Shown: positions 2,619-43,462, counted from the first letter of the stretch. The stretch: 64,000 bases of DNA from Neoconidiobolus thromboides FSU 785 (GCA_025603075.1 MU626315.1:1-64000), one strand, 5' to 3'. Translations and numbers: made by a program. Notes: generated by a model from the letters alone, not told the origin.

Positions 2619-2804
2619 TTATTTTGGTCCAAAACCAGAGATACCTAAAGCACCAACATTAAGGTCTTTGCCTACACCTGTAAGTAAGTTAATTTTAGCA
2701 TCATTCTCAGAAGGAGCAGTTTGACGTCTATTTAATGAATTTGGTACTACTAAAGCAGTAGATGCGGCAACCATAAAAGTGGCGATGATGAGATTGAATT
2801 GCAT
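2619..2804 (-). CDS. Small secreted peptide precursor (61 aa) with one RR site and one copy of the 21-aa motif
   Basis: Signal peptide MQFNLIIATFMVAASTA, propeptide ending NRR, then QTAPSENDAKINLLTGVGKDLNVGALGISGFGPK; TATAAAAA about 80 bp upstream on the minus strand. Confidence 0.8.
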   Translation of the reverse strand: MQFNLIIATFMVAASTALVVPNSLNRRQTAPSENDAKINLLTGVGKDLNVGALGISGFGPK

Positions 2805-3020
2805 TATTGTAACTTAAGAAGTAGGTATCTAAAATAATTAAAAGTGGTTTATTTGTAATTTATTTTGAAAAAAACCTTAGTTTTTATACTTTAGATTGGA
2901 TTAAGTTCATTTCTTTAACTTTCAGTTGGGCTCATCATGATTTTTTTGTTTAGCTAATAGTTTAATTTTACATATTGACGTTTTACCTGTTGGTTTTTAA
3001 TTTCCTGGTTTTAACAACTG

Positions 3021-3118
3021 TGGATATTTTTTTGGCTTCATCACTTTTTCCATCTTTTAAGCGCTATTTGAGCGGAAAAATTGTTAGTAAAATTCTTAAA
3101 TACAAAAATACATCTCCA
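3021..3118 (+). mobile_element. MITE-like element, copy 3
   Basis: Same core (ttttaagcgctatttgagcggaaaaattgttagtaaaattcttaaa), degenerate termini. Confidence 0.8.
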
Positions 3119-3904
3119 ACTGTTAATTTGGTTTTAACTTCTATCTTTAAATATACGTTTTTAGTTTAGAAATAGTATAGTTTAACTCAACAACTTAAAA
3201 TAAAGGAATATTAAATTAAGTTGGAGTAAATTACATTTTACAACAGTTTATTAAATGTATTAATATTTATCCTATTAAAAAAAACTACCTAATTTACTTT
3301 TGTATTTTTATTTTACAACTGGAATGTTTAGATTATTTACTATCATTTCTTAAATTTTAATCGTTACCTTCATTAATTATAGCTAATAGTTTATAATATT
3401 CTAGTGTTTTTAAAGTTTAATTTTAATCCAAACGCCAGCATCTAATCTATCTCTTTAAATTAAAGTTTAATGTTAAGCAAACGTTTAATGTTTTGGAGTT
3501 AAAGTTTTTTTTATTACACATCCAAGAGGATGGTTTGGTTTATTTAAGGCATAAAAATTCTACGAAGCAAGAACAATAATTGCAAAAAAAAAGACTAGAG
3601 AAGGGGATTGGTGTTGAGTACGTTAGAGAATGTTAGGATTGTCTTTTACAAAAAAACTCTTTTAAAAACCTTTCCACTGGTTTTTTTGAATGTCTTGTAG
3701 TATTGATTTCTAACACAAAATAACATTTAATCTTTTTGGATTTGCTATTGATCCTATCCTTTTCTCTCCTTTCTACTTTTACACCCTTCTTTACGCTTTT
3801 GAGTCTACTTCACCTTCCTATTTTTTTGGATCTAACTTATGAATAATCTACCGATTGTACTGCGAGTACTCTTCATAAGACCCCAAGGCTATTCTCTCAT
3901 CTCT

Positions 3905-4080
3905 ATTAATACATGTTGAATAATCCGCTGCCTGAAATAATAACTCTTACCTTTCCTTTAAAAGTTCGGAAAATAGACCCAGTGGCGTTAACTTCCTAAC
4001 CAAACGGCCCTCAAATTTCTTTTCTATAAATTTGTAATTAATAAAAATACTCACCCTATCAGTTTCAAGATTTGTAAAAA
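3905..4080 (-). pseudogene. Probable decayed Ty3/gypsy integrase C-terminal fragment
   Basis: Minus strand reads LETDRVSIFINYKFIEKKFEGRLVRKLTPLG then, after a frameshift, GSIFRTFKGKVRVIISGSGL. This resembles the GD-V-x-N...KFE-R/W...PLG-Y-L...G-L pattern of gypsy integrase tails. By eye only. Confidence 0.3.
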
Positions 4081-4875
4081 ACTACTTGATACCTTTCCAT
4101 TTTACTATTTTGTTCATTTAAGCACTATTAAGTAGAGAAAGTGTAAGTAGAATTTTTAAAAAAAATGTCTCCATTTGTTGAAAAAAACAATACTTTAGTA
4201 CTTTTATACCAGACAATATAAAATCTATAGAAAAGTTTAATTATTGTGTTTAAAATATGCATAAAAAACAGAATTATAGGTAGAATCTCTATTTATATAT
4301 AAATCAAAGTAATAGATGAATAGATGTTTAGTTGTTCAAAATTTATTATGCTAAGTCACATTTTATTTTTCATAAATAAACCAACATACTTTAACACCCT
4401 TTAGTTTCCTACTATATCCTGAATGTTAACTTATTTGCTATTAATTAGTATGTTTGATTGCCCACATCCTAACCTTAAGCCCTTTGACTATGTTATTAGT
4501 AAATGTTCACGCTATATACTTCCAAGCAATACTCTATAGCAAAAGCTTGTTCAAACATACAAATTCTTAGTATTTAAATAAAATATCAGCACTTATACTT
4601 GAAGACATTCTTTTGTTTTATTTACACTTTAAAAGTATTACGAGTATACTGGCTTTAGCTTTTTATCTTCAAAAACTGTAACTTCTAGTAGCTAATTGTA
4701 ACAGCATTAAAAACATTACCTTATAGAATAATAATAACAAAAGACGTGCATAAAACTTAATGATAGATACAACAGAATATAAAATAATAATGATCAGTAT
4801 AAATCAAATTTAAGATTAGCTACTTTTATACATTTATCCAAAAAATATAATTAAAAAATACAAATTCGATGCTAC

Positions 4876-5382
4876 TTATTTAGTTGCATTAATTATTATT
4901 GGTACTAAGAATAAGTGTTAATAAATAATAATGATAATAATAGTATAAACTTACCGATAATAGCAGCTAATATAATCAAAACTACGATACCAATAATTAT
5001 CTTTAATTTTAAATCTTTCCACCACATTCTCTTTCTTACTTTATTAGCTCCACGTTTAAACTGTTGTGCATTTTGATTAAGGTTTTCTAGATGGGAAAAT
5101 TAGGAGATATCTCTTATAAACAAAATAAAATAATAAATAAAAACCAAATAATTTTTCATTCATTACTGTCATTAAGTTAGATATTTTTAATTACCTGCTT
5201 TATCATTTAAAGTTTCTAATCTTTCTTGCTTTTCCATAACTTTATCAATGTTGTCTTGCATAATACCAACCACTTCATCCACTTGTTGTTGGATTAGCTT
5301 TGTCTTACTGCTTCCACCTTCTGCATATGACCTACAAAATATTTAGTTAGCTTATTTCAGTGACTATTGTTTTTAATTACAT
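4876..5382 (-). CDS. SNC1: Synaptobrevin/VAMP R-SNARE (Snc1/2-like, 99 aa), 4 exons
   Basis: Exons 5382-5381, 5331-5195, 5086-4955, 4904-4876 (300 nt, in frame). Translation MSYAEGGSSKTKLIQQQVDEVVGIMQDNIDKVMEKQERLETLNDKAENLNQNAQQFKRGANKVRKRMWWKDLKLK followed by a TM helix. Not in ORF track. Confidence 0.95.
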
Positions 5383-7098
5383 TTAGTCTTATTTTATTGA
5401 AAAAAATGAATTGTTCTTAATTTCGATTAATTATTTAGTAATCTTATTTTATTGGTTGTGATGATTAGGGTTGAGTTTCTCCGTAATTTTTTTAAACAAA
5501 AGTTTAAAGCTAATGTATTATAAAATAATAAAACATCAATTCAAACTAATGGTAGTAAAAGCCAAAAAATGAATGTTTAATAGTAACTATAAATAATAAA
5601 TGTATGTATTATATTGATTCGTCTGCCATAAGCCTTTTTAATAAAAATAAATAAACTTAAATCAGTTAAACCTAAACCTAAAATATAGCCTTAATTTGAA
5701 AGTGGCCCTACAAGTAAATGTTTTTCAGAGTCTTAAGTACTCAGTTAAAACAAATATTTATTAACAAAATAAAATTATCAGTTTGCTTTTAAAATATTGT
5801 TTTTGAGTGATGTTTATTTTAACTATTAATGTTTTTGACTCAAATTCCTTTTGTAACATATATTCTAATTACGATATTGATCGAACTGGGTCTCATATAT
5901 AAATAAGTGTATATTACAGAGACTAACATGTCATACCACTACCGGTTTTGCCTTAGATTTCTGTTGATCTCTTCAAAGCTTATAAAAAACATTGAAAGCC
6001 AAGCATTACATATAATTGACATTGATGTTGCTATAAAAATGACATCAATAAGTTATTGCAGGTTTCCTTTACTTTTATATTTTTACATATTCTATTATTC
6101 TGTTATCCTATAGTTTATACCTGAATGACCAGATGGTATAACCGACTAAGAATTCTGTGCAAATTCATAAAATACCATAGCTTTAACAAATTCTTCGGCC
6201 AGTTATAACTATCCCACTACTCATATATAAGTTGTCCTACAACTTTTTCATAATCTACTTTTTTTATATCAATATATTTGATTGGTCTATATAATTTTAT
6301 CAATATCAAAAAAAAGCAAGCTTAATATTAAAAGTCATTTTATAGAGCATCAAATTAAAAGATTGTTGTTATAAATGAAGGAATAAAATTAAATCATTTA
6401 AAAACAATCATAAGATAATTTTTCAAGCAAAGTTTTAATATCTTTGTGTTTTACTTTAATGTAAGTACAACTTTAAATAATAAAAGTATAGTTTCTATAA
6501 TTAAAAGCCTACTATGGATTATAAAATAATAAAAACATTTTTCAAAACAATAAAATAGAAATTCCAACTTTATATAAAAAGAAAAGATAATTTATTTTAC
6601 CATTTTAGGATGAGATTATAAAAATTACTTTATTTATTATCATGAGGAAGAATTGCTTGACAATTTGTTGCAGTTTACTTTTTTGATACTAATTTTTATA
6701 GTTCAATTTAATTTGCTTGCACTAAGCCATCCTATTTTCAACAAATGGTTTAAAACACATGGCACATCTTGCTACACATGGATCATATAGAAAATATAAA
6801 ACAAAGGGAATGGATAAATTAATTGACAGTAATAACTTAATAAATTGATGTTAAATTTTCAAAGAATATTCCATAATTAGCAGGACTTATTTCCAAATGG
6901 AGCAAATATAAGAAATTAGCAATTAAATAGGATGGATAGGTATTGAGAATAATGTGGAGAAGTTGAGCCGAGCCTAAAATAAACAGAATTGAAAGTATTC
7001 TTAAAAAACGGTGGCTATGCTTAAAATGGAGTAGATTAAGCTTAAACTGAAGAAAGTAGAAAACAAAATTTATTGAAAAAATATTTAACAAAAACAAA

Positions 7099-7680
7099 CT
7101 ATATTGATAAAGGAGAAGAATCCAAGCCTTTAGCTTCCAGTTCTTTAATTGGTGTCAAATGAGGCTTAAACGTATCTAAATTCAGTTGCATAGAATTAAC
7201 ATCATTTTGCTGGCTTTGGTTGAAATAAATGTTGTTAGTAATCAAATCTTTTGGCTTTAAGATAGGTGGGTAAACTTGTTCATGACTTATCATTTCTTTA
7301 CCACTATAATATTCTTCACCATTACTAAACGTATCATGTGTTGGTGTATTTGACCCGCGATTTCGTTGGGGCGGATAACTCATAGAAAAATTGTTTCTGC
7401 CCTCATGTATCAGATCAGAAATAGAAGTAAATTTTTTACTCACTCGCGTAGTATTCTCAGGTTTGTTAGCTTTTGGTTTACATCCTCTTTTGCGATTGTT
7501 GAACCACACTTGAACTTTACTTAATGGTATATCTAATTCTTCAGCAAGTTGCTTTTTTATTAAGTTTCCAGGGTTTGGATTCTTTCTAAAGTGTTCATTT
7601 AATACCTCCAGTTGATGGGGCTGGAATTTATAACGATGTTGATCCGGTTCATATACTTTTATTTTTATCCTTTCTTCCAT
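7099..7680 (-). CDS. Homeodomain transcription factor (193 aa)
   Basis: RYKFQPHQLEVLNEHFRKNPNP...KQLAEELDIPLSKVQVWFNNRKR fits the homeodomain (F8, L16, F20, W48, F49, N51). ATG at 7680 has a caaaATG context; the ORF extends upstream to 7746. Confidence 0.85.
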   Translation of the reverse strand: MEERIKIKVYEPDQHRYKFQPHQLEVLNEHFRKNPNPGNLIKKQLAEELDIPLSKVQVWFNNRKRGCKPKANKPENTTRVSKKFTSISDLIHEGRNNFSMSYPPQRNRGSNTPTHDTFSNGEEYYSGKEMISHEQVYPPILKPKDLITNNIYFNQSQQNDVNSMQLNLDTFKPHLTPIKELEAKGLDSSPLSI

Positions 7681-9165
7681 TTTGAATAAAAAAGTGATTT
7701 TTTTTATGCCATTGTTTTTGTACTCCATTTTAGCGCCCTCAGCCAATTAAAAGACTTGGAGTGATTCCTCATTTCATAAGTGGATTTTTCAATCATTCCA
7801 TTCTTGAAGCGTAGAATATGCTTTGTTCAATGTATTCCAATAGAAATGGATAGCAGACAAACATTATTGGCAGTCTATTTTTAATTAATTTCCTATACGC
7901 TATTTTATTATCAGCTTGATAGGATATTCTTAATTAACTATGAATAGTAACTTTACTTTTAGTTTCAATACATCTATGAAAGCTTTAATTTATAAATATA
8001 ATATTATAATAGCATAACAATAAGCTTTTTAGAAATATAAGATACAGTTAATACAAGGCTAAACATAGTATTTTTAAATACCATTCAGCTTTTTATTTAT
8101 AGTGGATAGTTAAAAAAATATTTAGTAGCAACAGTTAATAGAATTTGTGATATTAGACTTAATTAAGCTACAATTCTCATTTGATTTGAGAACAAGGGAC
8201 TTAACCTTTGAGCAATAAAAAATAAGAAAATTTTAAATAAAATTCAAGACATTTCAGTATTTCAAATATTCTATTTTATTTCAAATTCTGTTCTACAATA
8301 CTGTACAAAATAAATTCACCAGTTTCTAAAGTTTTAAAACATTTTTAGTGCCACAAAATTTAATGATCATTTTAATTTCAGGAACATTTAAGATTTTTAT
8401 GACCTTTCAAAGATTAAAAGATTCAATATTGTGAAACAAGCAAGTGTTTCATTATATCTTATTATCCATTAATCAACCATAATGTCTGTTGAATATAGAC
8501 CAAAAAAAATATTATAATGTTCTAGATAAAAACAAAGTTACAAGAGCTTTCAATTTACTGTTAGATATCAATTGAGGTAGTGAAAAGTGGAACTTTTTGT
8601 CTTTATAACTTTGTTATTTTTAGTTAAGCCAGTTTCAGTGGATCATATAAAACTTTTCTCACATTTTACTTCCTGAAACAGTATATACCTTTGCTCATAT
8701 AGTAATATAATAGAAATTCAAGTAAGTAGATTCAAAGTTGAGCATGTAAAGTTATTTACTCAACTTAAATAATGGGGACATTTTCAAAATAAGGCTTGGT
8801 GTATATCTTTTGCCCTTGGATATATATAAGCTAAAAATGGGTATTATCCAGTTTGAAATTTAACTAAGCTTTTCATCTTTTTTCAAATTTGTTTTAGCAG
8901 TAAAAAGACCATTACTCTTGTGGTTGAGTTTATTTAAATCAAATATTATCTATTTTAAAGTAGAGCTTCAGTTATATAATCCTACATATTTAAGTTGGGA
9001 TCTAACTTTTAAATGTAATTTTACATTAAAACTTTGGTCTATCATTACTCTTTAAATATTCTAAAACTTTGTGATAGTCAAGCAAAATATAAAACAGTTG
9101 CTAGGCTAAATTAAACACTATAAAACCTTATAATTCATCAAAGCTGTCAATAATCTATAACAAAA

Positions 9166-9279
9166 ATGAAATACTTTACCTTGATAGCTTTATTGTCCCT
9201 AATTGTTGCAATTCCATTAAATCACCCTAATGTTCCTGCTGCACCTAAAGGCAGACATGGTCACCATGGTCGCCATTAG
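9166..9279 (+). CDS. 37-aa secreted micropeptide with His/Gly/Arg-rich C-terminus
   Basis: MKYFTLIALLSLIVAIPLNHPNVPAAPKGRHGHHGRH*; signal peptide; caaaaATG context; TATAAAA at 9119-9125; AATAAA downstream; GC-richer than flanks. Below the ORF-track cutoff. Confidence 0.7.
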   Translation: MKYFTLIALLSLIVAIPLNHPNVPAAPKGRHGHHGRH

Positions 9280-10129
9280 CATTAACATCTTATGATAATT
9301 TTTCTAAATTTCAACTATCGTATAAAATAAAGATGAATTAAGGATTCATGTATATCATCCTTTTAAAGCGTATAAATATTAATATAGTAACATTTTATGC
9401 TATTTAACATAAATCATAATTAACTTAAATATCGTTGTATTTTTAATAATTTAAACAATGACAAAAATACCACTACTCTTATAGTTGAGTTTGTATAAGA
9501 ATAACAGCTTAGTTTATATAAATCCATCTTCTGTTTCAGTTAACAAAAATTAAAGATGCATTTTAAATTCTAGTTTATTGTTATATAGCTAGAATAATAG
9601 CCAACTTTTAATTTAGCATTCTATACTAGAAATTCAGTTTACTAACACTATTAAGCCACTTCAATCAATTATAGATAATCAATCCACAAAAGCAGCTATT
9701 AAGTTGAAGAATTGGTATAAAATCTTTCTATGATGTTAAACTTTGAAATTGACTTTTAAAGAAATGAAACGTTTATCGAAATATTTTTGGTGCATTTAGT
9801 CGTTGTAATTACATTGAACCGGTTTAGTGCTCTTTTCTCTTTGTCTTTCTAAAAAAATGGGGATTCTCACTCGGATATTTTTAACTTGATAGTGACAAAT
9901 TGAATTGGTTAAAATTACACTAAAAATTAAACGTTAATATTGTTTATAATCATGATTTAATAAAAAAGTGTTTCCTATGTAAATTCAAATTCAATATTCA
10001 GTTTAGATTGATATAGCTGGAAATAAGATCAACTCAACGTCCATACATATCTTTTGTTTTGTAACAAAACATGACAGATAAATACTATATAAATGGTAGT
10101 AAAAATTTGTATTATTTTTTCATAAAACC

Positions 10130-10432
10130 ATGAGAGTTTTTGTATTCGCATTATTAATTTCAATCGTTCTTTCTATACCTCATCCAAAGCAGGTGCTTGG
10201 GATTCAAAATATAATCTCTGATTTTTCTTTAGATGTGTTAAGTAGTAAAGGCCCCCTTGCACTTGAAAGTATAAAACAAGATCAACTAGTGGCTGATGTA
10301 ACTGCACCAAAAGCATTGGGACAAGGACAAGGACAGTCACAACCACAATCACAACCACAATCACAATCACAATCACAATTACAATCACAACCACAACCAC
10401 AATCACAATTACAATCACAATTACAACCATAA
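10130..10432 (+). CDS. Small secreted protein (100 aa) with Gln/Ser/Pro-rich tail
   Basis: Signal peptide MRVFVFALLISIVLS; TATAAA about 40 bp upstream; C-terminal (QS/QP/QL)n encoded by a hexamer repeat. Confidence 0.7.
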   Translation: MRVFVFALLISIVLSIPHPKQVLGIQNIISDFSLDVLSSKGPLALESIKQDQLVADVTAPKALGQGQGQSQPQSQPQSQSQSQLQSQPQPQSQLQSQLQP

Positions 10433-10456
10433 TTGCAGTCATAATTACAACCACAG
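10319..10456 (+). repeat. Coding hexanucleotide microsatellite (CAA-NNN)n
   Basis: caatca/caacca/caatta units; the repeat continues past the TAA at 10430-10432. Confidence 0.9.
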
Positions 10457-10661
10457 CGGTAACTTTAAACGGGTTCTTTCATATAGCAGCATTATATTAA
10501 ATGAACTCATTTTCTATAATAATATTATAATAAATAATATTACATATTAATCTTTATTCAAGTTATAATTTTTATTGTTTTCTATTTAAAATGGAACAAA
10601 ACTTAGTCTATGATATTTTTATGAACTAACATTTAATTATTAAACTTCACCAATATAAAGT

Positions 10662-10759
10662 ATATGAGAATATCTATTTTTGTCTAAGAAATTTGTTAAG
10701 ATTTTTTCCACTTGATAACGCTTAAAAATTGGAAAGTGATAAAACAAAAAAAACATCCG
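10662..10759 (-). mobile_element. MITE-like element, degenerate copy 4
   Basis: tttttccacttgataacgcttaaaaattggaaagtgat...aaaaaaacatcc aligns to the reverse consensus with many substitutions. Confidence 0.6.
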
Positions 10760-10909
10760 TTTTCAATTTTACATATTTCTTATTATTAAGAGTTGTCTCA
10801 TTTATGTTTATAATAATTTTTTTACAGAAAGTTGTTACTTTTATTAAAAATAAGGCAATTTAGAAAAGTATAAATTATTTGATATGTTAAAATGAAAGTT
10901 TTATAAAAT

Positions 10910-11080
10910 TTATTGGTTAGAAAGTTTAATACCAATTATATTAAGTTGAAGCTCATCAAATGTATTCTCTATAATTCCAGGAGATTTGTTCCCTTCAACG
11001 CCTTGACGACGATATAATGGTACTGACAATGAAAAGATTGAACTTGTGATTGATAATAAAATTAAGGCTTGGAATTTCAT
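10910..11080 (-). CDS. Small secreted peptide precursor (56 aa) with RR site and one motif copy
   Basis: ATG at 11080: MKFQALILLSITSSIFSLSVPLYRR-QGVEGNKSPGIIENTFDELQLNIIGIKLSNQ; TATATAAA about 80 bp upstream. Confidence 0.75.
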   Translation of the reverse strand: MKFQALILLSITSSIFSLSVPLYRRQGVEGNKSPGIIENTFDELQLNIIGIKLSNQ

Positions 11081-11519
11081 ATTAAAAAAACAATACAAGA
11101 GTAAAAGTAAAGGAATCAAGAGGGAATTATTAGCTTAGAAGCCATAATAACTCGATTGTTTATATATCATTTGTTTATTTTACATTTTTCCGTTTCATTT
11201 TATTTTGTTATTATTTAGTCTCCGTGTTGATCTATTAAATAGAATTTATTAAAATTCATTTTGCTTACCAACTGATTGATTAGATCATATTTATTTTATA
11301 TTAACTAAATTAGTATATGATCAAACTTTTAACCAATTGTTGAACTATTACTAGATATAGAAGATACTTAGGCTTACAAAAACATGCAAAAATAATGTTT
11401 TAGAGAGGATTAAAGTAATAGAAGCGTCATACGAACTGAGGTTCTATAACCAATAGAATGATGGGATACACTTTAAGTTTTTTTATTTTTTATTTTTCTT
11501 TAATTTTTTAAATAATAAA

Positions 11520-12346
11520 ATGGTTTTAAATAAACAATGTGAGCTGTTAGGCCCATTTGCAATAATGGTTCAAGGAATTATGGGTATGTTAGCTATTTCT
11601 TCTTTGGTATTTAAAAGGTATACGGAACACCCACGTAGAGCTTTTTTAATTTGGTAAGTTTAACTACATCGCTTATTTTTAGTTATTTTTTTGGTTATTT
11701 TTTGCTTATATTTGATATCAGGTTTTTTGATGTAAGTAAACAAGGCTTTGGGGCATTAATGATTCATTTTTTCAATATATTTATATCTGGAGAAAGTGGG
11801 CGAGAGAATGAAAAATATTCTAATCCCTGTTTATGGTATTTATTAAATTTATTATTAGATACAACGTTAGGTGTATTTATTTTGTACATTATAATTGACA
11901 TAATGAATAAAGTGCTAAAAAACCACAAGTATTCCCAATTAGCCGACTCTGGAAATTATGGAACTCCAATCCAATTTAGTATTTATCTTAAGCAGCTAGG
12001 TTTATTCCTAATGAGTTTAATTATTATGAAAATATTAATCTACATAATAATATCTCTGTTTCCTTATATCCTTTATTTGGGACATTTAGTACTTTCGCCT
12101 TTAGAAAGATTAAATGATTCAAGATATCAGATTGTATTAGTTATGATGATTTTGCCCACCATTTTAAACATTTTACAATTTTGTCTAGTTGATTGTATTA
12201 TTATGGGCAACAATGAAAAAATAATAGACTCGAACCATTCCTCACCAGCTATTTTGCCTTTATTGATTAGTAACGAACTACCTTCACCAGATGAAGTTGA
12301 TTTCAAACTCGATTCTCCCATGCTAAATGACTCGTCCAAATCTTAA
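11520..12346 (+). CDS. STIMATE/TMEM110 family multi-pass membrane protein (yeast YPL162C-like)
   Basis: Exons 11520-11653 and 11722-12346; CELLGPFAIMVQG...KRYTEHPRRAFLIW|FFDVSKQ, NPCLWYLLNLLLDTTLG, SGNYGTP motifs. Confidence 0.85.
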
Positions 12347-12639
12347 TATTTATTTTATAATAATTAGACACCTTTCATCTTATTTTCTACTATCTACCAA
12401 CCTGTTAGTTTATTCTTATTACTATGATATTAAACCCTTGTATTATTGTTAAATTTTACCTTATGTATTTTATATTATTATTATTACATTACAAATTGAA
12501 AAGAATATAGCAAGCATTGACTTTAAGCCAATAAAAAATCAAAAATCAAAACTTTTTTAGTTTGACCAATCAAAAGAGAGAGCTACCAAGTTAAAACATG
12601 AGATAGTATTAAGTTTTAGTTTTAAATTATATACATACA

Positions 12640-13005
12640 ATGAATATTGAAGAGCTTACGTCAAATAATCAAGGAAAACAAGGGAGAGGTAATCAACCCA
12701 GTGAAGCCGAACTTCAAGCACAACAAGCAGCAAGAGAGGAGATATTAAGTACCATATTGGATTTCGAAGCAAGGGAAAGGTTGAATAGAGTTAAAATGGT
12801 AAAAAGTGAAAGGGCGTTAGAAATTGAAAATAAAATCATTTATCTAGCTAAAACTGGACAATTGAGAAATAAAGTTAGTGAGCCCATGTTGATCCAAATG
12901 TTAGATGGAGGAAGCCAAAATTCTAATAAAGAGAATAATCAAGGTAAAATTCGTTTTCAACGAAAGCGGTATGATGATGAGGAAGAAGAAGAATTTGATT
13001 TATAA
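12640..13005 (+). CDS. PDCD5: PDCD5 / dsDNA-binding domain protein
   Basis: ILSTILDFEARERLNRVKMVKSERALEIENKIIYLAKTGQLRNKVSEPMLIQML is the PDCD5 family pattern; acidic C-terminus. Confidence 0.9.
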   Translation: MNIEELTSNNQGKQGRGNQPSEAELQAQQAAREEILSTILDFEARERLNRVKMVKSERALEIENKIIYLAKTGQLRNKVSEPMLIQMLDGGSQNSNKENNQGKIRFQRKRYDDEEEEEFDL

Positions 13006-13815
13006 ATCTTTCATCTATGTCATTAAAATCTGTCTAACTTCCTTAAATTCAAACTTTAAGCTTGTTTTTGTTAGTTTAATTTTTATCTTAATCTATCCAT
13101 TCATAGCAAAATTAGCTTCATTTGCATCAAAAGTATTTATTTTTTGTTGTCCTATATAATATTGGACTAACTTAGTATAAACGATTTTAACGCTTTTTTA
13201 CTATTTACATTTCTAAACTGTTTATATCTAAACTCTTGATATGAGGTATGTTAGCAAATTGAAAGTAGAGATTTACTAGATTTTATTGAGGTGAATAGCA
13301 TCATAGATTCCAATTGGAATGAAATATACCCAAAATTATACAGGCTATAAAAATACATTTAACTCTACCATAATACATCTAAAAAATATTTTTGCGACAA
13401 GTATACGATTTTATCTGATAGCAGTCATATTTATTCTTACAGTATACTATAATTCAACTTCATATCACAATTTTATAGATGATGTTTTGATCAAGGATTC
13501 TCTAATATCTTAAAAATGTTGATAAGTTTTATTATGATAGATTCAAATATTTAACAACGACTACAGTTATTATTTATTCAGCTTTCTGTTTTTAATTCCT
13601 TACCTGTTTGTTTTCTTTATATAGCATAGAATAGTGCCAAAGTATTTTGTTTAATATATTTATTTACCAAGTACTCTTCAAATCTCTTATATATGCTTAT
13701 ATTATATAACTGTATATTATCAGTAAACTGCTATTGTTCTAAAGTACAGTAAAGTTTCTACAAAATTTAATAATGCTACTATTTTGTATAAATTTATTAA
13801 CTTTCAAAGAAATGT

Positions 13816-14820
13816 TTATTTAAGTGAATCAAAGAAGGAATCTAATTCAATATTTCCGCCTGATATGATTAATCCGATATTTTTGACATCAGCATACTTT
13901 TGTTTAAATTCTTCATTGAATAAAATTGCAGCCAGAGGTACAGCACCAGAAGGCTCAACAACTAACTTCATTCGTTCCCAAATTATTCTCATAGCTTTGA
14001 TAATTTCATCTTCAGTGACAGTAAATATATCGTCCAAATTTTCTTTGATTATTCCATAAGTCAAATCACTCATACTAGATCTTAATCCATCTGCAATGGT
14101 ATTTGGTTTTACAGAAGGAACATACTTACCACTCTTAATTGATTGATAACAATCATCAGCACCTTTTGGTTCACCAGCAAACCCTTTGATGCTACTACTA
14201 AATCCTTTTACTGCTAAAAGAGTGCCAGATAATAGCCCACCTCCGCTAACAGGGGCAATTACTGCATCTAAAGCTACTCCCATTTCTTTAGTCTGCTTAA
14301 GTAACTCTAAAGCAGCTGTTCCTTGGCCGATTACAATATCTTTGTGATCAAAAGGAGGAATTAAATAGCCACCAGTTTCTTTAACAACCTTTTCAGCAGT
14401 TTCAACTCGACTTTCAGCTGATGGTCCAGATTCTACAATCTTAGCGCCATACCCTAAAACAGCTTTTACTTTTATTTTAGAGCAATTATTTGGAAGCACA
14501 ATAGTACTATTGATTCCAAAAGATTTAGAGGCTAAAGCTACTGCTTGTGCGTGGTTTCCACTAGAATGAGCTACTATTCCTTTCTTACGGACTTCTTCAA
14601 TACCTACTGATTCTACTAATTGACCTATTGCATAAGTGGCGCCTCGAATCTTAAAGGCACCTATTTTTTGTAAATTCTCACATTTAAAATATAGGTTTTT
14701 GCCATCAGTCATAGAGTCTATACTACTACAAGTCAACACTGGAGTTGTGTGAATTTTTCCTTCAAGCTTTGAAGCTGCATGTTCAATATCATTCAAAGTC
14801 AATTTAATTGTGTTTGTCAT
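13816..14820 (-). CDS. SRY1: PLP-dependent serine racemase / hydroxyaspartate ammonia-lyase (fold type II)
   Basis: FKCENLQKIGAFKIRGA (PLP lysine), HSSGNHAQA, GQGT, PVSGGGLLSG, TIADGL, EPSGA. Confidence 0.85.
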   Translation of the reverse strand: MTNTIKLTLNDIEHAASKLEGKIHTTPVLTCSSIDSMTDGKNLYFKCENLQKIGAFKIRGATYAIGQLVESVGIEEVRKKGIVAHSSGNHAQAVALASKSFGINSTIVLPNNCSKIKVKAVLGYGAKIVESGPSAESRVETAEKVVKETGGYLIPPFDHKDIVIGQGTAALELLKQTKEMGVALDAVIAPVSGGGLLSGTLLAVKGFSSSIKGFAGEPKGADDCYQSIKSGKYVPSVKPNTIADGLRSSMSDLTYGIIKENLDDIFTVTEDEIIKAMRIIWERMKLVVEPSGAVPLAAILFNEEFKQKYADVKNIGLIISGGNIELDSFFDSLK

Positions 14821-15770
14821 TATTATTCAAAATATTTAAAAATAGTTTGATATAGTTCTATATTATCCTTTATATACTGCGTAAAGTACCATTTCATTGG
14901 ACAGCTGATAATTAATTAGAGTATTGTTTGTATGTTTATTTTATTTTTTGGGTCCTCGCGTTTATTTGCAGTTATATTAAGCTTATATTATTAATCCTAG
15001 TTAAATTTAAAGGATATAGCAAATATCTTTGAAAGTCTTTAAATTTATAGATAAAATTTAAAAGGTGTCAAAAAATCAGAATTAGCTCTACGAAACATAT
15101 TTCAATCACAGTTTTAATTTTCTAAATCTTTTAATCCTTCAAGAATTAAAGAAAGCTAATATACCTGTATTGAAAGCTTCAAGATAAAAGCTAGTTGTAG
15201 TATAATTATCAAAATCTCATTTTAACAGGCTCAAGGTAGTTCCGCTCATAGCGAACTCTGATAAGCGTAAAAAAACAAGTTATGCTTTAATAGTATTTGA
15301 AGTTCTAAACTCTAAAGAGATTCACCTTCAGACTAACTTTAGGATCAATGATATCTCATAAAGCAGAGGCTATCATAAGATGTAGATATGCTCCATCCTT
15401 TTAACAATTTCCTCATTTTGTATTCCTAAATTTAAAAAAACTCTTGGTCAATTCTTGAATAAAAAACATAACCATGTATTAACACTCCATGAATATACCA
15501 AGTACCACTTAATTGGTAATTTGTAAGAGCATATTATATAATTAGTTATTCAATGCTTTGTAATATTAACAATAAGACATAATATTTAAAAGTATGTTTA
15601 AAAGTGAGAAAAAGAGTTATAAATGATAAAAATTAAACTAAATAATTAAGGTTAATCAATATTTGATGACGAATTTATAAAAGTATAAAGGATTAAGAGT
15701 CTAATAAAATGAAAACGAAGTTATTTAGCATATTATGATTCCTCTAAATCTCGAAGGATCTTAATCAAAT

Positions 15771-16514
15771 TTAAACACGTTTCTTAAAAGCCCCTCTAGC
15801 TGCTCCAGCTACTTGTAAGTCTTGCAATGAATCATCGACTGCAGAAAAATCAAAGAAGTCTTCATCACGTCTTTCTAACGACCCTTCCTTCTTTATGAAC
15901 TCTCCTCTAGCTAATCCAGCTACTTGTAAGTCCTGTAATGAGTCATCGATTGCAGAAAACTCGAAGAAATCTCCAGAACGTCTTTCTAACGACCCTTCCT
16001 TTTTTATGAACTCTCCTCTAGCTAATCCAGCTACTTGTAAGTCTTGTAATGAGTCATCGATTGCAGAAAAATCAAAAAAGTCTTCAGCACGTTTAGCAAG
16101 TGATCCCTCTTTCTTTTTAAAATTTCCTCTAGCTGCGCCAGCTACTTGTAAGTCTTGCAATGAATCATCGACTGCAGAAAAATCAAAGAAGCTTTCACCA
16201 CGTTTTGCCAGAGATCCTTCTTTCTTTTTAAAGTTCCCTCTAGCTAATCCAGCTACTTGTAAGTCCTGTAATGAGTCATCGACTCCAGAAAAATCAAAAA
16301 AGTCTTCAGCACGTCTTTTTAATGGTATTTCGCTCTTTTGACGGAACTTACCATCACCTAGAGCAGTAACTTGTAGCCTATCCAATGAATTTCCTAGTAA
16401 AGCAAAGCCTTCTACAGGGGCTGGATTACGTCTAATTAAATTGGAGTCGATAGGTAATGAAGTGTAACCTAAAATTAAGCATGAAACGATGATGGAAACT
16501 ATGTTTGCTTTCAT
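15771..16514 (-). CDS. Kex2-processed repeat protein (KEP) precursor A, 247 aa: signal peptide, one divergent unit and five 37-aa repeats
   Basis: Repeat AEDFFDFS(G/A)(V/I)DDSLQDLQVAG(L/A)ARG(N/E/A)F(K/I)KKEGSL(A/E)(K/R)R; every unit is preceded by KR/RR; 111-bp nucleotide period. Confidence 0.92.
   Translation of the reverse strand: MKANIVSIIVSCLILGYTSLPIDSNLIRRNPAPVEGFALLGNSLDRLQVTALGDGKFRQKSEIPLKRRAEDFFDFSGVDDSLQDLQVAGLARGNFKKKEGSLAKRGESFFDFSAVDDSLQDLQVAGAARGNFKKKEGSLAKRAEDFFDFSAIDDSLQDLQVAGLARGEFIKKEGSLERRSGDFFEFSAIDDSLQDLQVAGLARGEFIKKEGSLERRDEDFFDFSAVDDSLQDLQVAGAARGAFKKRV
15774..16310 (-). repeat. Coding tandem repeat, 111-bp period, about 5 units
   Basis: ccagctacttgtaagtc..g.aatga.tcatcga recurs every 111 bp. 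Confidence 0.95.
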
Positions 16515-16882
16515 TATTATTAAATCAAAGATATTTATAAAATAGTATAGACAGCAATCAATTGAACTTTGCTTTTATACACTTTTGCTTTTAAAATTTA
16601 CATTGTTTTATTTTGCTATAAATTAATTCTCCTGTTACTTATTCTTACAATAAACTAAAAATTCAAAATTTCCGTTATAATAGTCTAATCTTCAGTTGAG
16701 CTTAAAATTTGTAGGAATTAAAAATTCATTCTATTTAGGAGTTTGATAGACTAAAGGAAATAAAAAATAGCTCGGAAATTACATTTGCACTTTTACAACT
16801 AAATATAAAAGGTCGACATAGATACTTGAAGTTAATTAAGTTATATTCTAATCATAAATACATTTTATATTAATCTTTAAGT
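16515..16882. promoter_or_regulatory. Bidirectional promoter of the divergent KEP pair
   Basis: 368-bp intergenic region with TATAAAAG on each strand (16579-16572 minus; 16804-16811 plus), about 60-80 bp upstream of each ATG. Confidence 0.7.
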
Positions 16883-17617
16883 ATGCAATTAACCCATATT
16901 ACTGTCTTGGTTTTATCTCTTTTAACTGGATACAGCTCCCTTGCAATCCCAAATCAAAATATCCAAAGACGTGCTGATGACTTTAAATTTTCACTAACAA
17001 AAGACTCCTTAAGTAGAATTGCTACTGGCCTTATAGCCAATAGCGAATTTGTGCCAAGAAAAATAGAAAAGCGCGATGAAAATGGTTTTGCATTTGCATT
17101 AGCTAGTAAATCATTACAAAGAGTAGGTGGTGGTATCGGAGGTATTCATGATTTTGATGGAACTAAAAAACAAAGACGTGCAGAAGATGGTTTTGGGGTT
17201 TCTTTAGCCAAGAACTCTGTGTCGAAAATAGGCGGTGGTATTGGAGGTATTCATGATTTTGATGGAACTAAAAAACAAAGACGTGCAGAAGATGGTTTTG
17301 GGGTTTCTTTAGCCAAGAACTCTGCGTCGAGAATAGGTGGTGGTATTGGAGGTATTCATGATTTTGATGGAACTAAAAAACAAAGACGTGCAGAAGATGG
17401 TTTTGGAGTTTCTATAGCCAAGAACTCTGCGTCGAAAATAGGTGGTGGTATTGGAGGTATTCATGATTTTGATGGAACTGACGAAAGAAGCAGCGGAACA
17501 GGTTCCGGAATTTTAGCTAAAAATCCACTAAGCTCTGGATTTTCTGGATCTCCCGCATCACCTGTAGGACTTGCAACACCTGCAACACCTGCAGCGCCCA
17601 TTAATCCAGCAGTTTAA
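16883..17617 (+). CDS. Kex2-processed repeat protein (KEP) precursor B, 244 aa: signal peptide, one divergent unit, four 35-aa repeats and a Pro/Ala tail
   Basis: Repeat AEDGFGVS(L/I)AKNS(V/A)S(K/R)IGGGIGGIHDFDGTKKQRR; units delimited by RR/KR; 105-bp period. Confidence 0.92.
   Translation: MQLTHITVLVLSLLTGYSSLAIPNQNIQRRADDFKFSLTKDSLSRIATGLIANSEFVPRKIEKRDENGFAFALASKSLQRVGGGIGGIHDFDGTKKQRRAEDGFGVSLAKNSVSKIGGGIGGIHDFDGTKKQRRAEDGFGVSLAKNSASRIGGGIGGIHDFDGTKKQRRAEDGFGVSIAKNSASKIGGGIGGIHDFDGTDERSSGTGSGILAKNPLSSGFSGSPASPVGLATPATPAAPINPAV
17075..17479 (+). repeat. Coding tandem repeat, 105-bp period, about 4 units
   Basis: ggtggtat.ggaggtattcatgattttgatggaact recurs every 105 bp. Confidence 0.95.
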
Positions 17618-18143
17618 GTAAGCACTTACATTATAAATATCCACAGTCCTAAAGGCTTTACACAAGTATGAGATATTATCATTTGTAAGCCTATTTCTAT
17701 TTTTTCATTTTAGATTCATAAATAAATAAGGTTTAATTTAAACTTTCAGAGTGATTTAAAGTAGTATAGATTTTTGTAGTATTTTTTCAAATATATAATT
17801 TTTAAATATGCTATAAATTGAAGATTACTTAAGTTATAATAGACGATACCTTTCTGTACAAATTCTTTATACTGAACTGTTTTTACCCTTGGTACCAATA
17901 ATCTATAATGAAATTCCTAGATGAAAGTGCCTTTAGCCATATTAACGAACTTATACTTAATCAACGGTCACTAATTGATATTGTTGAGAACATTGTAAAA
18001 GTGCTAATCTATTTTATGATTGATCTGAGGTGTTAGATAAGTATTGAACTTTTGAAGGATCTAAACTTTATCAAAGAGAATATAAGAATTTTTTAAAATG
18101 TTATTAAATATAAATAAAAAGCAATGATATTGATAATAAGAGT

Positions 18144-18246
18144 ATATGGTGATGTTTTTTTGGTTTCACTACTTTTTCCATTTTTAAGCCCTATTTGAGA
18201 GGAAAATTTGTTAGTAAAATTCTTAGGCAAAAGAATACATCTATAT
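18144..18246 (+). mobile_element. MITE-like element, copy 5
   Basis: atatggtgatg...ttaagccctatttgagaggaaaatttgttagtaaaattctta...catctatat. Confidence 0.8.
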
Positions 18247-18665
18247 TATTTATAATATATGCCTTTTAAAATCAATTAGCAAAATAAAGTATGAGAAAGC
18301 CAATTGAATAAAATACCAATAGTTGAGTTTATTATAAATTTAAAAATATAATATCTTTAAATTTTCTATACGATAAACTAATAGAGGCAAAAAAAATAGA
18401 ATTAGAAACTGTATAAAGATGTAATAATATTAATTTTTTAATTACTAGTTTTAGTAAAAAGAAATACATAGGCGGTTAATAATAGTGTTGTACTGTTATG
18501 AAATACCTTCAAATTTTAATTTACTAGTTTATATTTGTCTTTCAAAATAAAAGTAGCTTATATTAGTTTAATTTATAATAATTTCTCACAGATAATTTTA
18601 TTATCCTTTGAACATGCAGTTCATATTTCTTGTTCTCGATTCATTCTCTATTATTTACTAACTTA

Positions 18666-18772
18666 ATATGGAGATGTGTTTTTGTATTTGAGAATTTTAC
18701 TAACAATTTTTCCACTCAAATAGTGCTTAAAAGATAGAAAAAATAATGAAGCCAAAAAAAACATCCCCATAT
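18666..18772 (-). mobile_element. MITE-like element, copy 6
   Basis: atatggagatg...catccccatat, reverse orientation. Confidence 0.85.
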
Positions 18773-19631
18773 ATTAAATACTTAAATCAAAAAACTTGGA
18801 TATTCGATTAAAATTAACAAATAGAACTGTAGTTTTCACTAAAATTAAAGAATAATTGGACTAATTAATTTTCAAAAATTAATGCAATAAAAATTAAAGT
18901 GATGTTTCCCTAATAGTATTTATTTAAGACAATTATAGTAATAAAAATAAAATCAAAATGAAAAAATACTGGATATATAATTATCGATTTTATTCCATAA
19001 AAATTGGAATTCTCCATTTTAATTTTTAAAATATTTGATCTTTTTAATCCTTGCATTCATAAACATGTTATGTTATTTCTAATACAAATTTTGACGTTAT
19101 CAAATTTAACTGCTTACCTAAGGCTCATTTTTTACATTTTGTTTTAGTTTAATTTGACTTTCTATTAATTTAATTTAAAACTATCAGTATAGTAAATAAC
19201 ATAAAACTTACAGTTTTGAATAAGAAAGAATCAAATATAATAAAAAGATTATAGAAAGTTAAGGGATGTAAGTTCAATAGAAACTGATATCATAAAATGT
19301 GGTTAATAGAATTTAATTTAAATGGCTAAATGTCGGAGTTAACTTCTAAAAATATACATTTCAAGTATGATATAATTACGTTAAAATTTAATTCAATAAA
19401 ATTTAGAAAATTCAATGAACTAAGATTGATTTATGATTATATAAAAATATTTAGTAAATTAACATAAATAACAGTGAAATAAAAAGATATGGAACATTAA
19501 CTTTATATACAAATAAAACAGAACGATTATAATTAAACTTCTTTATATATTATTTGTAATAGTTATATTAGATTTTGCAACTTAGTTTTAAAACTCTTTT
19601 TTTTACAACGAGTTCGAGTTTAAATTATGAA

Positions 19632-20540: not shown

Positions 20541-22966
20541 AATAAAAAAAGATGTTTTTATATAAAATTTAAAAAGTGTACTAACAAAATTAGCCTTCAA
20601 AGTGATAACATATGAAATCATACCTACTTGCGACTTATCCATTGGGTTACTCCAATCAATGATTTATAATTGAATTGAGTATCGCTATATGGAATTTCAT
20701 AATAAATGGGGAAATCGTAGCCTAGTAGAATGATTAGCTAATCTATAAACTGCAAGTTAACAATTAGCTAAGGAATTCAATTATCACATCTAGTTAGATT
20801 GAACCAATTAAGTTAATTAAATTGAAATTCACTAATAAATTTGTTAAAATGTCGCACTTTAAGATTTCATTTAAGGATCCTATCCAGTCAAAAACGCACC
20901 TTATTAAATTTTAAAAATAGGATTTGTTATTCTATTTTATAACATAATTTTTAAAAAAATAGAAAACTTTAGCCAATGAAACATGAATAGATTATTAATT
21001 CATCTTTCTATTTTACATAATCCATTAACTATGAATTCATAATACTGAAAATATTCATACTAATGCTTTAAAAGTAAGCTTTGGCTTGAAAATTTTAGAT
21101 ATTTTCTCAAAAAACGGAAAAACTTGAAAAACTTTTCAATTAAACTCGGTCCTATTCCACCTCAATTTTGGTTAATTTTGTTATTTTAATTTTTAGCTAA
21201 TTTCTTTTTTAAGAAGTTTACACTCTTTTTTCTTACCTTTTTTTCAGTATTGTGCCTAAATCTTGAGTTAGTTGTTCTGACTATTATATCATCTTAAAAA
21301 TGCCTAAGTATTTGATTGATAGAGTTACATAGAGTTATAGAACTATTTAACTAACATACTCTTTTTTTATTCAATATCTTCCATTTTATATAATTATAAA
21401 ACTGTTGTTTATTAATAAAACAAACTGTTCTATTAGTGTTTTAATTTCAAAAGCTAAAACTAAATAAGTATTTATAAGATTTTGACTCTATCGACTTCGT
21501 GAAAAAATATTAAGTCATACTAGGAGTTATTATAGGGACTTAAAACAAAAACTTATCTCAGTATTATTTCTATTTAGTTTTTTATACATTTAGAATTGTC
21601 CAAAGCTTCATTCCACTTGTAGTAAATCGCCTCTTATTTCACACGTGAGGATCACTATACAAAGTGGAACTTGAAGCTATAAAATAGAAGCTGACCAAAC
21701 CAAAAGTTGGTGCTACTAAGTTGGAATAATTTGTATTGTTTACACAGCCTTTCCTATTTTATTACGTCCTCTTATAGTCCTATAGCGATTATTATTAGGC
21801 TTTCCATATAAATCCCTTTATTCACAGTAGAAACATTTGAAAGCTTTGCTCATTGAAATTTATTTTTAAAGATAAGAGCTATTTGATGCTATTTAATTTA
21901 ATATAGTTATTTTATAGTTTTAAAAATATATTGCGGATATATTTTTTTACATAATAATCCAATGTTTGGTTTTTCATCAATTCGGTCAATATAATATAAC
22001 TATAGTAAGTTTACATTATAGTTGTTAAGTAAAAAAAATGATACAATTTAGAAATACTATCTATGATATGATAGTTGAATTTTGAAATTGCCAAGAGTCT
22101 CTCATTGTCAGTATTGTTTATTAGAAAATAAAGTAAAAATTAGCTATTAAAAGTAACCTTGTTTTCCATAAAAAGTAACAACTTTTTTTCTACGCTGCTA
22201 ACAATAAGTCATGTTAATTATTAGATTTCTTTTATACAAAATATTATAGTACTTTACAGTTTTTAGTTTGAGTATATTTTATCATTACAGCTCGTCTAGT
22301 TATAAATTTCAAAGGATGTACAAATGTTAGATTCGATCTACAAACTAATAAAATATTATCGATATACCTATTTTCCGCTTCTATAACATATATTTTGTTC
22401 CATCTGAGTCTTTTGAATAAAAATCATATCCCTCTTCTGTGTTTTTAAATATTACAAATTAGTATTTATTATGGCTTAAAAATCTGGTTGAACTTTAAAT
22501 TGAATAAACAAACTTAGGTATTAGAACATTAAAACAATGGAATGATGACTATGATCAAGGATAGTTTATAATTTTTTTAAAGCTCTAGCTTATTGAAGAC
22601 TTTGTATAGAAACAATTCAGATATAGTACATAACCTTTTTGTTAATATTAAGCTAAATTAATTATACCCTATTGCAGATTGTATAGCATTTTATTATATA
22701 GTTATACTATAATATTTAATCAAATATAAAAATTTAGAGTAGATGAATCTGAATTTACTATAACAGTATAATAATATAGTTTATTAAAATTTTCAACTTA
22801 TATAGTAAAGTGTCTCTTTAACTTAGTAGATAATGTATGGAGTTTTGTTTTTTATAATAAAATGCTATTTATAAAAAAAGAAACAGGGAAATAATCACCA
22901 ATTAAAAATTGATAAAATAGCTGTACTTGTAAGTATAATAATACTTTAAATTGATTTTATAATAGT

Positions 22967-23073
22967 ATTTGGGAGTGTCTTTTTTAACTTCATTATTTCT
23001 TCCATTTTTTAAGCGCTATCTAAACGGAAAATTTGCTAACAAAATTCTTAAATACAAAAATACATCCCCATTT
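22967..23073 (+). mobile_element. MITE-like element, copy 7
   Basis: tttgggagtgt...ttttaagcgctatctaaacggaaaatttgctaacaaaattcttaaatacaaaaatacatcccca. Confidence 0.8.
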
Positions 23074-23466: not shown

Positions 23467-23563
23467 AGTGTTTTTTTTGGGTTTATCACTTTTTCCATCT
23501 TTTGAGCATTATTTGAGCGGAAAAATTATTAATAAAATTATTAAACAAAAATACATTCCCATT
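23467..23563 (+). mobile_element. MITE-like element, copy 8 (left end damaged)
   Basis: tttttccatcttttgagcattatttgagcggaaaaatt...aaaatacattccca. Confidence 0.7.
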
Positions 23564-24765
23564 TGTGAAAAAATAAAGACAATAAATAGAAAAATAAAAA
23601 GTTAGTATAATAGCAAGGGTTTAGTTTAAGATTTTCAATAGAATTGATGTACAAAATAGAAAGTGGAGCATGTATATGTTAGATAGATAGCCCATAAGTT
23701 TTAATTCTGCGACGAATTAATTTAGGTGGCACTTTGATTGATATAGTTTTATTTTATAAGTAATAAAAATAAGCTTTGATCTTTTCTAAGACTAACATAA
23801 TGATACAAAACCCTGTTTAATGTTAGAGATAAAAGTAAGCTGCCTATAAAACGTAATTTGTTAATTTTTGAATATTATCAACCTAAACTACCTTGATCAA
23901 ATCATTTATTAATTACTCAAGCATTTGTTTTCAAAGCTAAATTATAATTTCAAGCTCTATTTTTAACTTAAATAATATAAAAATAGAAAGAATTGAAGCA
24001 CATTTTATTTTTAATTTTAATGACACTCAAAATTAATTTTATAAAACATATCTAATTTCAGGGATGTTTTAGCAAAGGAGGGATATGTAATAATAAAATA
24101 TTGATATTGTATTTGAATGTCAGAGTCATTTAATTTATATTTTATATTTCATATAATAAACTTTAGTTAATAATCATTCTAACCTTAAAATAATATAATA
24201 TAAGCACATTGAATTAGATAAAATATAAATTTATCTATCTTAATTGGGATAAGTTTAAATGTAAAGTTTCAGCTTTCTAAATTAAGATCAAATGTCGATA
24301 ACTTAGTAATGTTTCAAATACTACTAATAACTATAATCAAAGTAAATAATCTAACAGTAGTGAAAATAGAATAAAGTATATATATATGAAACTACAATAC
24401 TGAAAATTTTAGCCTTTAATCCGTAATTGTTAACACAATAAATAAAAGAATAGTAGCTTGAAGTATCAATTTTTCCGTTTACTTGAATAATTTAACAAAT
24501 TCCCATGATACTTTGAAAGCTTAATGATTGGCCGATTACATTCAGTATGAAAATTGACTCTATCAAAAACTCCATCTACCATCCAGCCTAAAGTAACTTA
24601 ATTGGCTGATTTAGGACAAAGCAGACATAAACAAGTGATGATTCGTTTCTACAAAGTTTAAGGCTCAATCAAAGCTTTTAAAAAAAGCCAACTAATTTCT
24701 CTTCACCAATATTAACTAATATAAACCCAAATTCAATATTGTAAATATTAACCGTTTATCTGGCT

Positions 24766-33601: not shown

Positions 33602-33704
33602 ATATGGGGATGTATTTTTATGTTCAAGAATTTTACTAACAAATTTCCTATTCAAATATTGCTTAAAAGATGGAAAAAGTAGAAGCTAAAAAAATATCCC
33701 TATA
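33602..33704 (-). mobile_element. MITE-like element, copy 9
   Basis: atatggggatgtattttt...aagaattttactaacaaat...aaaatatccctata. Confidence 0.8.
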
Positions 33705-33891
33705 TATTATAATTTCCTTTTGAAAATTGCTTTAAAAACTAACAGTTTGCCACTTTTTAATGTGCATCACCTTTATGTTAAAAAATGTACTAGCTTTCTA
33801 AACATCTTTTAAAGGTTTTCAATAAAAAGAAGAATAAGACTATATAGCTTTATTAGTTTATAAAATAAAATACTTGTTATATGTATTTCAA

Positions 33892-42242: not shown

Positions 42243-42348
42243 TATGGAGATGTTTTTTTTGATTTTATTACTTTTTCCATCTTTTGAACGCTATTTAAGT
42301 GGAAGGATTGTTAGTAAAATTCTTAAATGAAAAAATACATCCCCGTAT
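42243..42348 (+). mobile_element. MITE-like element, copy 10
   Basis: tatggagatg...catccccgtat. Confidence 0.85.
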
Positions 42349-43218: not shown

Positions 43219-43324
43219 ATATAGGGATGTTTTTTTGATTTTATTATTTTTTCCATTTTTTAAGCGCTATTTGAGTGGAAAAATTGTTAGTAAAATTCTT
43301 AAACACAAAAAAACATCTCCATAT
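43219..43324 (+). mobile_element. MITE-like element, copy 11
   Basis: atatagggatg...ttaagcgctatttgagtggaaaaattgttagtaaaattcttaaacac...catctccatat. Confidence 0.85.
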
Positions 43325-43462
43325 CTAATAGCGCTAGCACGTATATTATTCACTTTATTGATAATGATTAGATGATCAATATTTAAGAGATAATATTTAA
43401 GAAAAAAAGGTGTGCAGCACTTTATAGGAGATATTAAAGGAATACTCGTACTTGATCTATTA

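Follow-up and report, generated by a model that had tools for sequence, protein, structure and literature searches.

The Rep1 precursor of Ustilago maydis is cleaved by Kex2 into about ten linear peptides, each tens of residues long, which form amyloid-like surface fibrils outside the cell. Ece1 of Candida albicans is a KR-delimited polyprotein of non-identical peptides of about 30 aa, among them candidalysin, a cationic amphipathic helix, and the Qsp1 gene of Cryptococcus neoformans encodes a single unit of a secreted signaling peptide that is matured extracellularly by another protease. To our knowledge, no peptide derived from a KEX2-processed repeat protein (KEP) has been characterized in early-diverging fungi. 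Here, we describe two neighboring genes for putative KEPs, precursor A and precursor B, together with a probable single-unit relative, S1, from the genome of Neoconidiobolus thromboides FSU 785. The window analyzed is the first 64 kb of MU626315.1 (111,839 bp; GCA_025603075.1), and window coordinates are those of the record. We favor, with moderate confidence, the reading that A and B are a divergent pair of paralogous KEP genes specific to a fungal lineage, that S1 is most likely a single-copy version of their module, and that a further open reading frame (ORF) in the neighborhood, S3, is unrelated to them.

The definition of KEPs comes from Le Marquer et al. 2019 (PMC6339444), where Rep1, Ece1/candidalysin, and Qsp1 are cited, and from Umemura 2020 (PMC7329392). 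The two surveys collected 1193 and 7878 KEPs (PMC6339444, PMC7329392), and 2560 of the 7878 were without any homolog, so that an orphan family is the rule rather than the exception. In the larger survey a KEP has at least three tandem repeats of 8–100 aa between KR, KK, RK, or RR sites (PMC7329392); in the other it yields at least four fragments after in silico cleavage at KR or RR, with clustered repeats that make up at least 15% of the protein (PMC6339444). Because at least three repeats are required, single-unit genes cannot be detected by the KEP surveys. By leader (assigned with a hydrophobicity rule), repeat number, and repeat coverage, both A and B fall within the sequence definitions of the two surveys. 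S1 and two other ORFs considered here, S2 and S3, have one unit or none and lie outside the repeat definition.

Precursors A and B and the single-unit gene S1

The A/B locus consists of the following features.

15771-16514, minus strand: precursor A, annotated gene, ORF of 247 aa
16515-16882: A/B spacer, 368 bp, AT-rich, between the divergent start codons
16883-17617, plus strand: precursor B, annotated gene, ORF of 244 aa

The spacer is presumed to be a shared promoter region, and the sequence TATAAAAG lies in it about 70 nt upstream of the start codon of B. Precursor A has a hydrophobic leader and a short pro-segment ending in RR (residues 28–29), followed by a divergent first unit and then five tandem units of 37 aa. 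In each unit of A, a core some 27 aa long (AEDFFDFS.. to ..ARGNF) is followed by KK(K), a 5-aa spacer, and KR or RR. Precursor B has a leader, RR at residues 29–30, five units of 35 aa (AEDGFGVS.. to ..GGIHDFDGT, then KK-Q-RR), and a C-terminal tail rich in Ser, Pro, and Ala. The repeats are also seen at the DNA level, with a period of 111 nt and 4.8 copies in A and a period of 105 nt and 3.4 copies in B. The unit counts are 6 of 31–39 aa in A and 5 of 34–36 aa in B, all ending in KR or RR, and the repeats cover residues 30–247 of 247 in A and 31–205 of 244 in B. Leaders were assigned by our own hydrophobicity criterion, an uncharged 10-residue h-region within the first 22 residues, which is present in A, B, S1, and S2; beyond the leader, neither A nor B shows another long hydrophobic stretch. 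The locus is represented in RNA, with 15–39% of the sampled words of 15700-17700 contained in the RNA runs.

The first unit of A differs from the later ones, which open with AED, in that NPAP stands directly after the RR (16415-16426, residues 30–33). NPAP amounts to two X-Pro dipeptides of the type removed by Ste13-type aminopeptidases, and S1 has QTAP at the corresponding place.

The comparison of the two proteins supports A and B as true paralogues that form one family of secreted multi-unit precursors. They match each other by BLASTP (1e-07) and by phmmer (2e-05 to 3e-11), the phmmer and profile searches covering 757 six-frame ORFs of the window. Both leaders carry GY.SL.I, and DNA similarity is found at the KRRAED codons. 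At an overall identity of 26%, the KK that follows the core and the KR or RR that precedes the next AED are invariant columns, while the linker between them is 5 aa long in A and 1 aa in B. A change of linker length between basic sites that are kept is the pattern expected of processing sites with a discarded spacer. The repeats of A differ from one another by 78 synonymous and 63 non-synonymous codon changes, and core positions 4–25 are nearly invariant in the protein although their codons vary; the peptide sequence of A is therefore under purifying selection. The look-alikes of A retrieved with a language model are themselves poly-peptide precursors (MF_alpha, apidaecin, tachykinin, and allatostatin).

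Word-indexed homolog searches with A and B found nothing, and an exhaustive HMMER search of 1.84 billion protein representatives with an A+B profile gave no accepted homolog. Two bacterial giant repeat adhesins (E ~1e-07, 7–10 stretches) were rejected as repeat-on-repeat artefacts. Exact look-up found the A and B sequences themselves absent from the protein collection searched. Repeat-rich proteins may be under-represented in that collection, which weakens claims of 'no homolog' for such proteins. Pfam had no family for A, B, S1, S2, or S3; for A and B nothing was found at E=0.05, and only unrelated families appeared at E=0.06–0.08, well below the cut-offs. On the contig beyond the window, from 64 to 74 kb, no further family member was found. 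A recurring weak match at 34521-34649 (minus strand), which has neither start codon nor leader, was rejected as chance. A preliminary description of this stretch had spoken of an undescribed peptide family; this holds for the sequence family, for which no homologs were found, but not for the class, since KEPs have been described since 2019.

The single-unit candidate lies 13 kb from A and B, with housekeeping genes in between.

2619-2804, minus strand: S1, unannotated ORF of 61 aa with a leader, RR at residues 26–27, and one unit

S1 can be aligned over its whole length with the leader and first unit of A and B, with 36% identity to A, and its stop codon falls at the first post-unit basic site of B (GFGPK in S1, EFVPRK in unit 1 of B). 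It was the best non-self match in the window by phmmer with A (E=0.076) and by a hidden Markov model (HMM) of the units (E=0.046), and it also led the non-self matches of an HMM for leader and unit 1 to which only A and B contributed (E=0.009). When the 23,408 21-mers of the window were ranked with the A/B units as reference, the 21-mer of S1 was first. None of 2000 composition-matched shuffles reached its HMM score, its ungapped position-specific scoring matrix (PSSM) score had p=0.003 against composition-matched shuffles, and hhalign gave P=0.0014. The codon-usage score of S1 (0.34) equals the scores of A and B and exceeds those of 97% of null ORFs, and RNA run X6 contains 54% of the sampled words of 2560-2860, the S1 locus. 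An Atlas search with S1 gave no informative match (best score 0.67). From this sequence evidence, we consider it likely that S1 belongs to the A/B family as a single-unit member.

Several points weigh against this account of A, B, and S1, and some of them would suit an alternative in which only A and B are related and the likeness of S1 comes from chance, composition, and a generic leader-RR layout. The mature part of S1 compared pairwise with the units by Smith-Waterman is no better than shuffles (p=0.47), its HMM scores are low (8.5–11.4 bits), the hhalign probability is 17.7%, and its Gly/Leu/Ala-rich composition together with the leader-RR layout could yield a chance resemblance. However, pairwise Smith-Waterman has low power here, as true A-B unit pairs reach only p ~0.017, and chance does not readily account for an ORF that is the top non-self match in four differently built window searches, that beats 2000 of 2000 shuffles, and that aligns from end to end with a stop at the position of B's first dibasic site after a unit. 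We regard a family of A and B alone as unlikely. Further points bear on the account as a whole. Our leader rule is weaker than the published SignalP/TMHMM-type criterion for KEPs, and secretion, cleavage, and peptide ends are read from sequence. The size of the family and its local clustering are judged from this contig up to 74 kb, and the silence of the homolog searches is only moderate evidence, because the searches did not return A and B themselves.

Predicted processing and the shape of the peptides

If A and B are KEPs, the leader would take each protein into the endoplasmic reticulum, and a kexin-type protease in the Golgi would cut after the RR that ends the propeptide and after KR or RR, and possibly KK, bounding every unit. 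A carboxypeptidase would trim the basic residues. Each protein would be expected to yield, besides short spacers, a peptide of about 27–30 aa in five or six copies, linear, net-acidic, and free of Cys and Tyr; the predicted A peptide is AEDFFDFS..DDSLQDLQVAGLARG.F and the predicted B peptide is AEDGFGVS..IGGGIGGIHDFDGT. S1, most likely the leader-plus-unit module in a single copy, would yield a single neutral peptide of 30–34 aa. Our best guess is that the peptides are extracellular and linear and have their effect on the biotic environment or on the surface of the fungus itself, and that they are neither a cyclized toxin of the class of peptides that are made by the ribosome and modified after translation (RiPPs) nor a membrane-lytic helix.

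The predicted cores have a net charge of −5 or −6 in A and −2 in B, and that of S1 is neutral. An amphipathic helix had been proposed from the 4-8-11 spacing of hydrophobic residues, and this is not supported: the hydrophobic moment at 100 degrees (0.18–0.42) is not above shuffles, and an AlphaFold2 model of A, made with the A+B alignment, is disordered (mean predicted local distance difference test score, pLDDT, 32) with no helix in the units. The model has a short low-confidence strand at LQV(A/T) in every unit of A, a weak echo of the beta strand that had been placed at motif positions 11–13.

A bolder reading takes the module, of roughly 21–30 residues, as used both in single-unit genes (S1, perhaps S2) and in polyproteins (A and B) within one 15-kb neighborhood, the locus evolving peptide dosage and diversity by unit amplification, and the acidic, strand-prone peptides as a new functional class, for example self-assembling or host-directed. 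We consider it quite unlikely. The narrower claim, that the single-unit and multi-unit genes hold the same module, stands very probably for S1, only marginally for S2, and not for S3.

It may also be asked whether the units are cut apart at all. A and B could be secreted or wall-associated disordered repeat proteins with uncleaved Lys/Arg pairs, as might be suggested by the fully disordered AlphaFold2 model of A and by the Ser/Pro/Ala-rich tail of B, which is typical of wall and surface proteins. Both dibasic positions, however, are kept at 26% identity while the linker changes in length, and acidic residues follow each RR in A and B, just as acidic residues follow KR in yeast alpha-factor. 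The published experience with predicted KEP genes points both ways, as knock-outs had no detectable phenotype in one study, while in other fungi precursors of like layout did give peptides, seen by mass spectrometry, whose ends were as predicted (PMC9769878). We find uncleaved repeat proteins decidedly unlikely, and the processed precursors outlined above remain our preferred reading.

S2, S3, and the rest of the window

Two more ORFs had been placed in the same family.

10130-10432, plus strand: S3, ORF of 100 aa, N-terminus hydrophobic, tail rich in Gln, Ser, and Pro
10910-11080, minus strand: S2, unannotated ORF of 56 aa with a leader, RR at residues 24–25, and a tail of 31 aa

S2 is a marginal candidate. 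It starts at the ATG at 11080, which gives the 56-aa product, and not at the TTG at 11119. The 21-mer of S2 ranks 30 of 23,408. Its PSSM score (p=0.029 against composition-matched shuffles), its Smith-Waterman comparison with unit 1 of A (p=0.024), and hhalign (P=0.022) are each marginal; its HMM score is reached by 234 of 2000 shuffles (p=0.12), and S2 is not in any phmmer or HMM match list from the window ORFs. The codon score of 0.19 is not distinct from the null. RNA contigs cover S2 in two runs, at 10919-11206 in X5 (record 19) and at 10838-11655 in X6, and among the five strain variants listed, three are synonymous and the others are I>L and V>I. S2 is probably a real small gene. Its membership in the A/B family is possible but doubtful; it could be one more relative, strongly diverged, or a small secreted peptide of unrelated origin.

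The two RNA runs differ at this place. In X5 the S2 contig is separate and of low depth, and the transcript of the neighboring STIMATE gene starts near 11512. In X6 one unbroken contig runs from 72 nt past the S2 stop through S2 and a 460-bp spacer into STIMATE exon 1, with a splice at 11655; either the 5' ends of the two divergent transcripts overlap or, in the condition of that run, the 5' untranslated region of STIMATE is long and antisense to S2.

S3 is not a family member. It lacks any dibasic site, and its motif is at chance in every test: the 21-mer ranks 952 of 23,408, the PSSM has p=0.83, 973 of 2000 shuffles reach the HMM score (p=0.49), Smith-Waterman has p=0.71, and hhalign gives P=0.14. 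A word-indexed search found no homologs of S3. It is nevertheless probably a real gene. The public record has at this locus a gene of 89 aa on the minus strand (10173-10442), whose product is a run of V and I. In the plus frame of S3, 8 of 12 variants of a divergent haplotype are synonymous, against an expected fraction of 0.32 (P=0.016), compared with 2 of 9 in the antisense frame that is annotated; S3 has a codon score of 0.29, and the antisense frame one of 0.06. Because the variant pattern and the codon usage favor the plus ORF, the public annotation is probably on the wrong strand there. An RNA contig covers 9900-10481, and in run X3 six nucleotides (GGACAA) are inserted in frame after 10318, within the Gln-rich tail of S3.

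The preliminary description had joined A, B, S1, S2, and S3 into one family by a 21-residue module. All seven 21-mers quoted for it are present in the translations of the ORFs named, but the motif does not directly follow the dibasic sites, starting 5–11 residues later where there is such a site. A family of all five genes seems to us very improbable. S2 does have the leader-RR layout of A, B, and S1, reaches p=0.02–0.03 in three tests, and is best aligned to unit 1 of A (VEG, N.(L/F)D.LQ(V/L), (L/I)G), and the tests have low power, since true comparisons of A with B units reach only p=0.0003–0.07 by PSSM. Against this, S3 shows neither likeness nor a dibasic site, S2 is in no match list and has an HMM score that 12% of shuffles attain, and S1, S2, and S3 are not significantly similar to one another; the marginal p-values must also be discounted because the ORFs were picked by eye from the whole window. 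Six ORFs of the window have a signal-peptide-like start and KR or RR at residues 19–45, of which four are A, B, S1, and S2 and the remaining two look like junk. By HMM and PSSM, with the shuffle comparison that had been proposed as a check, the motif is thus real in A and B, probably real in S1, marginal in S2, and at chance in S3, and what stands of the five-gene system is a lineage-specific family of three genes, perhaps four, that belongs to a known class.

The predicted cores of A and B are 27–30 aa long, and those of the ustiloxin type are much shorter. That A and B are precursors of cyclized RiPPs of the ustiloxin/dikaritin type is hardly tenable: the precursor layout of a signal peptide and Kex2-flanked repeats is alike, and a DUF3328 gene lies near 22% of KEP genes (PMC7329392), but no DUF3328/UstYa, tyrosinase, or methyltransferase is among the genes called at 2.6–23 kb, where the neighbors are a PLP enzyme, a PDCD5-like protein, STIMATE, and a bZIP protein, and no unit of A or B contains the Tyr that such cyclization needs (PMC6339444).

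The window has a G+C content of about 27% and holds fungal genes, some with introns, for a Zn2Cys6 factor, a bZIP protein, a homeodomain protein, STIMATE, a PDCD5-like protein, and a PLP enzyme. The homeodomain gene (7099-7680; Pfam Homeodomain, 2.4e-13) lies between S1 and S2, and no link between it and the peptide genes was seen. A and B are annotated in the public record, S1 and S2 are without annotation, and the S3 locus is annotated on the opposite strand; the public annotation would thus miss two or three small secreted-peptide genes and contain one probable wrong-strand call.

A palindromic element of about 110 nt, resembling a miniature inverted-repeat transposable element (MITE), occurs at about 12 sites in the 64 kb.

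MITE-like copies: 2059-2344, 3019-3129, 10662-10755, 18143-18241, 18665-18776, 22961-23071
MITE-like copies, continued: 23473-23566, 33601-33710, 42233-42352, 43218-43324, 43462-43557, 43749-43859

Copies flank S1 and one lies beside S2; because the element is found at about 12 window sites, this says nothing about the family. Read contigs pile up and break at the copy at 10703-10753. Over 9900-11700, DNA run X4 and RNA run X5 each have two versions of the stretch, one nearly identical to the window and the other about 6–7% different (13/181 nt; 15/255 nt), and the strains of X4 and X5 are either heterozygous diploids, heterokaryons, or mixed samples.

Comparison with known systems

Orphan KEP families are numerous and mostly without known function, and A, B, and S1 do not reveal biology of a new kind. 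Provided that the peptides are made, however, these genes would be a KEP family of novel sequence, found in an early-diverging, AT-rich fungus. A and B share with KEPs the signal peptide, the lack of another hydrophobic segment, the tandem units at KR, RR, or KK that fill most of the protein, and the absence of homologs outside the lineage.

MFalpha1, the alpha-factor gene of Saccharomyces cerevisiae, is among the top language-model look-alikes of A, and is like A and B in that a leader and pro-region precede repeated peptides, each of which follows KR and has an acidic residue behind the cut; its repeat number differs between genes and species. Unlike MFalpha1, A and B have no Pfam match to PF05436/PF04648 (MF_alpha_N/MF_alpha), their units are 27–30 aa rather than 13, and dipeptides of the Ste13 type (X-Ala/X-Pro) are confined to the NPAP of unit 1 of A.

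Among the fungal precursors with characterized products, Rep1 has a comparable unit length, and its fibrils would fit the weak beta-strand prediction for A, the likeness being one of description only. The predicted peptides of A and B differ from those of Rep1 in being strongly acidic, and a surface activity for them is purely speculative. A and B resemble Ece1 as KR-delimited polyproteins with peptides of about 30 aa. The predicted peptides of A, B, and S1 are unlike candidalysin, however, since they are acidic or neutral (net −6 to 0), have no helical amphipathicity, and are predicted to be disordered. S1 is like Qsp1 in being a single-unit secreted-peptide gene, with no sequence relation between the two.

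What sets A and B apart from other KEPs by their sequence is the pair of basic sites per unit with a spacer that would be discarded, the long acidic cores of 27–30 aa, and the probable single-unit paralogue. Should the peptides be made, a single-unit gene and multi-unit precursors of one module could be compared in a concrete case.

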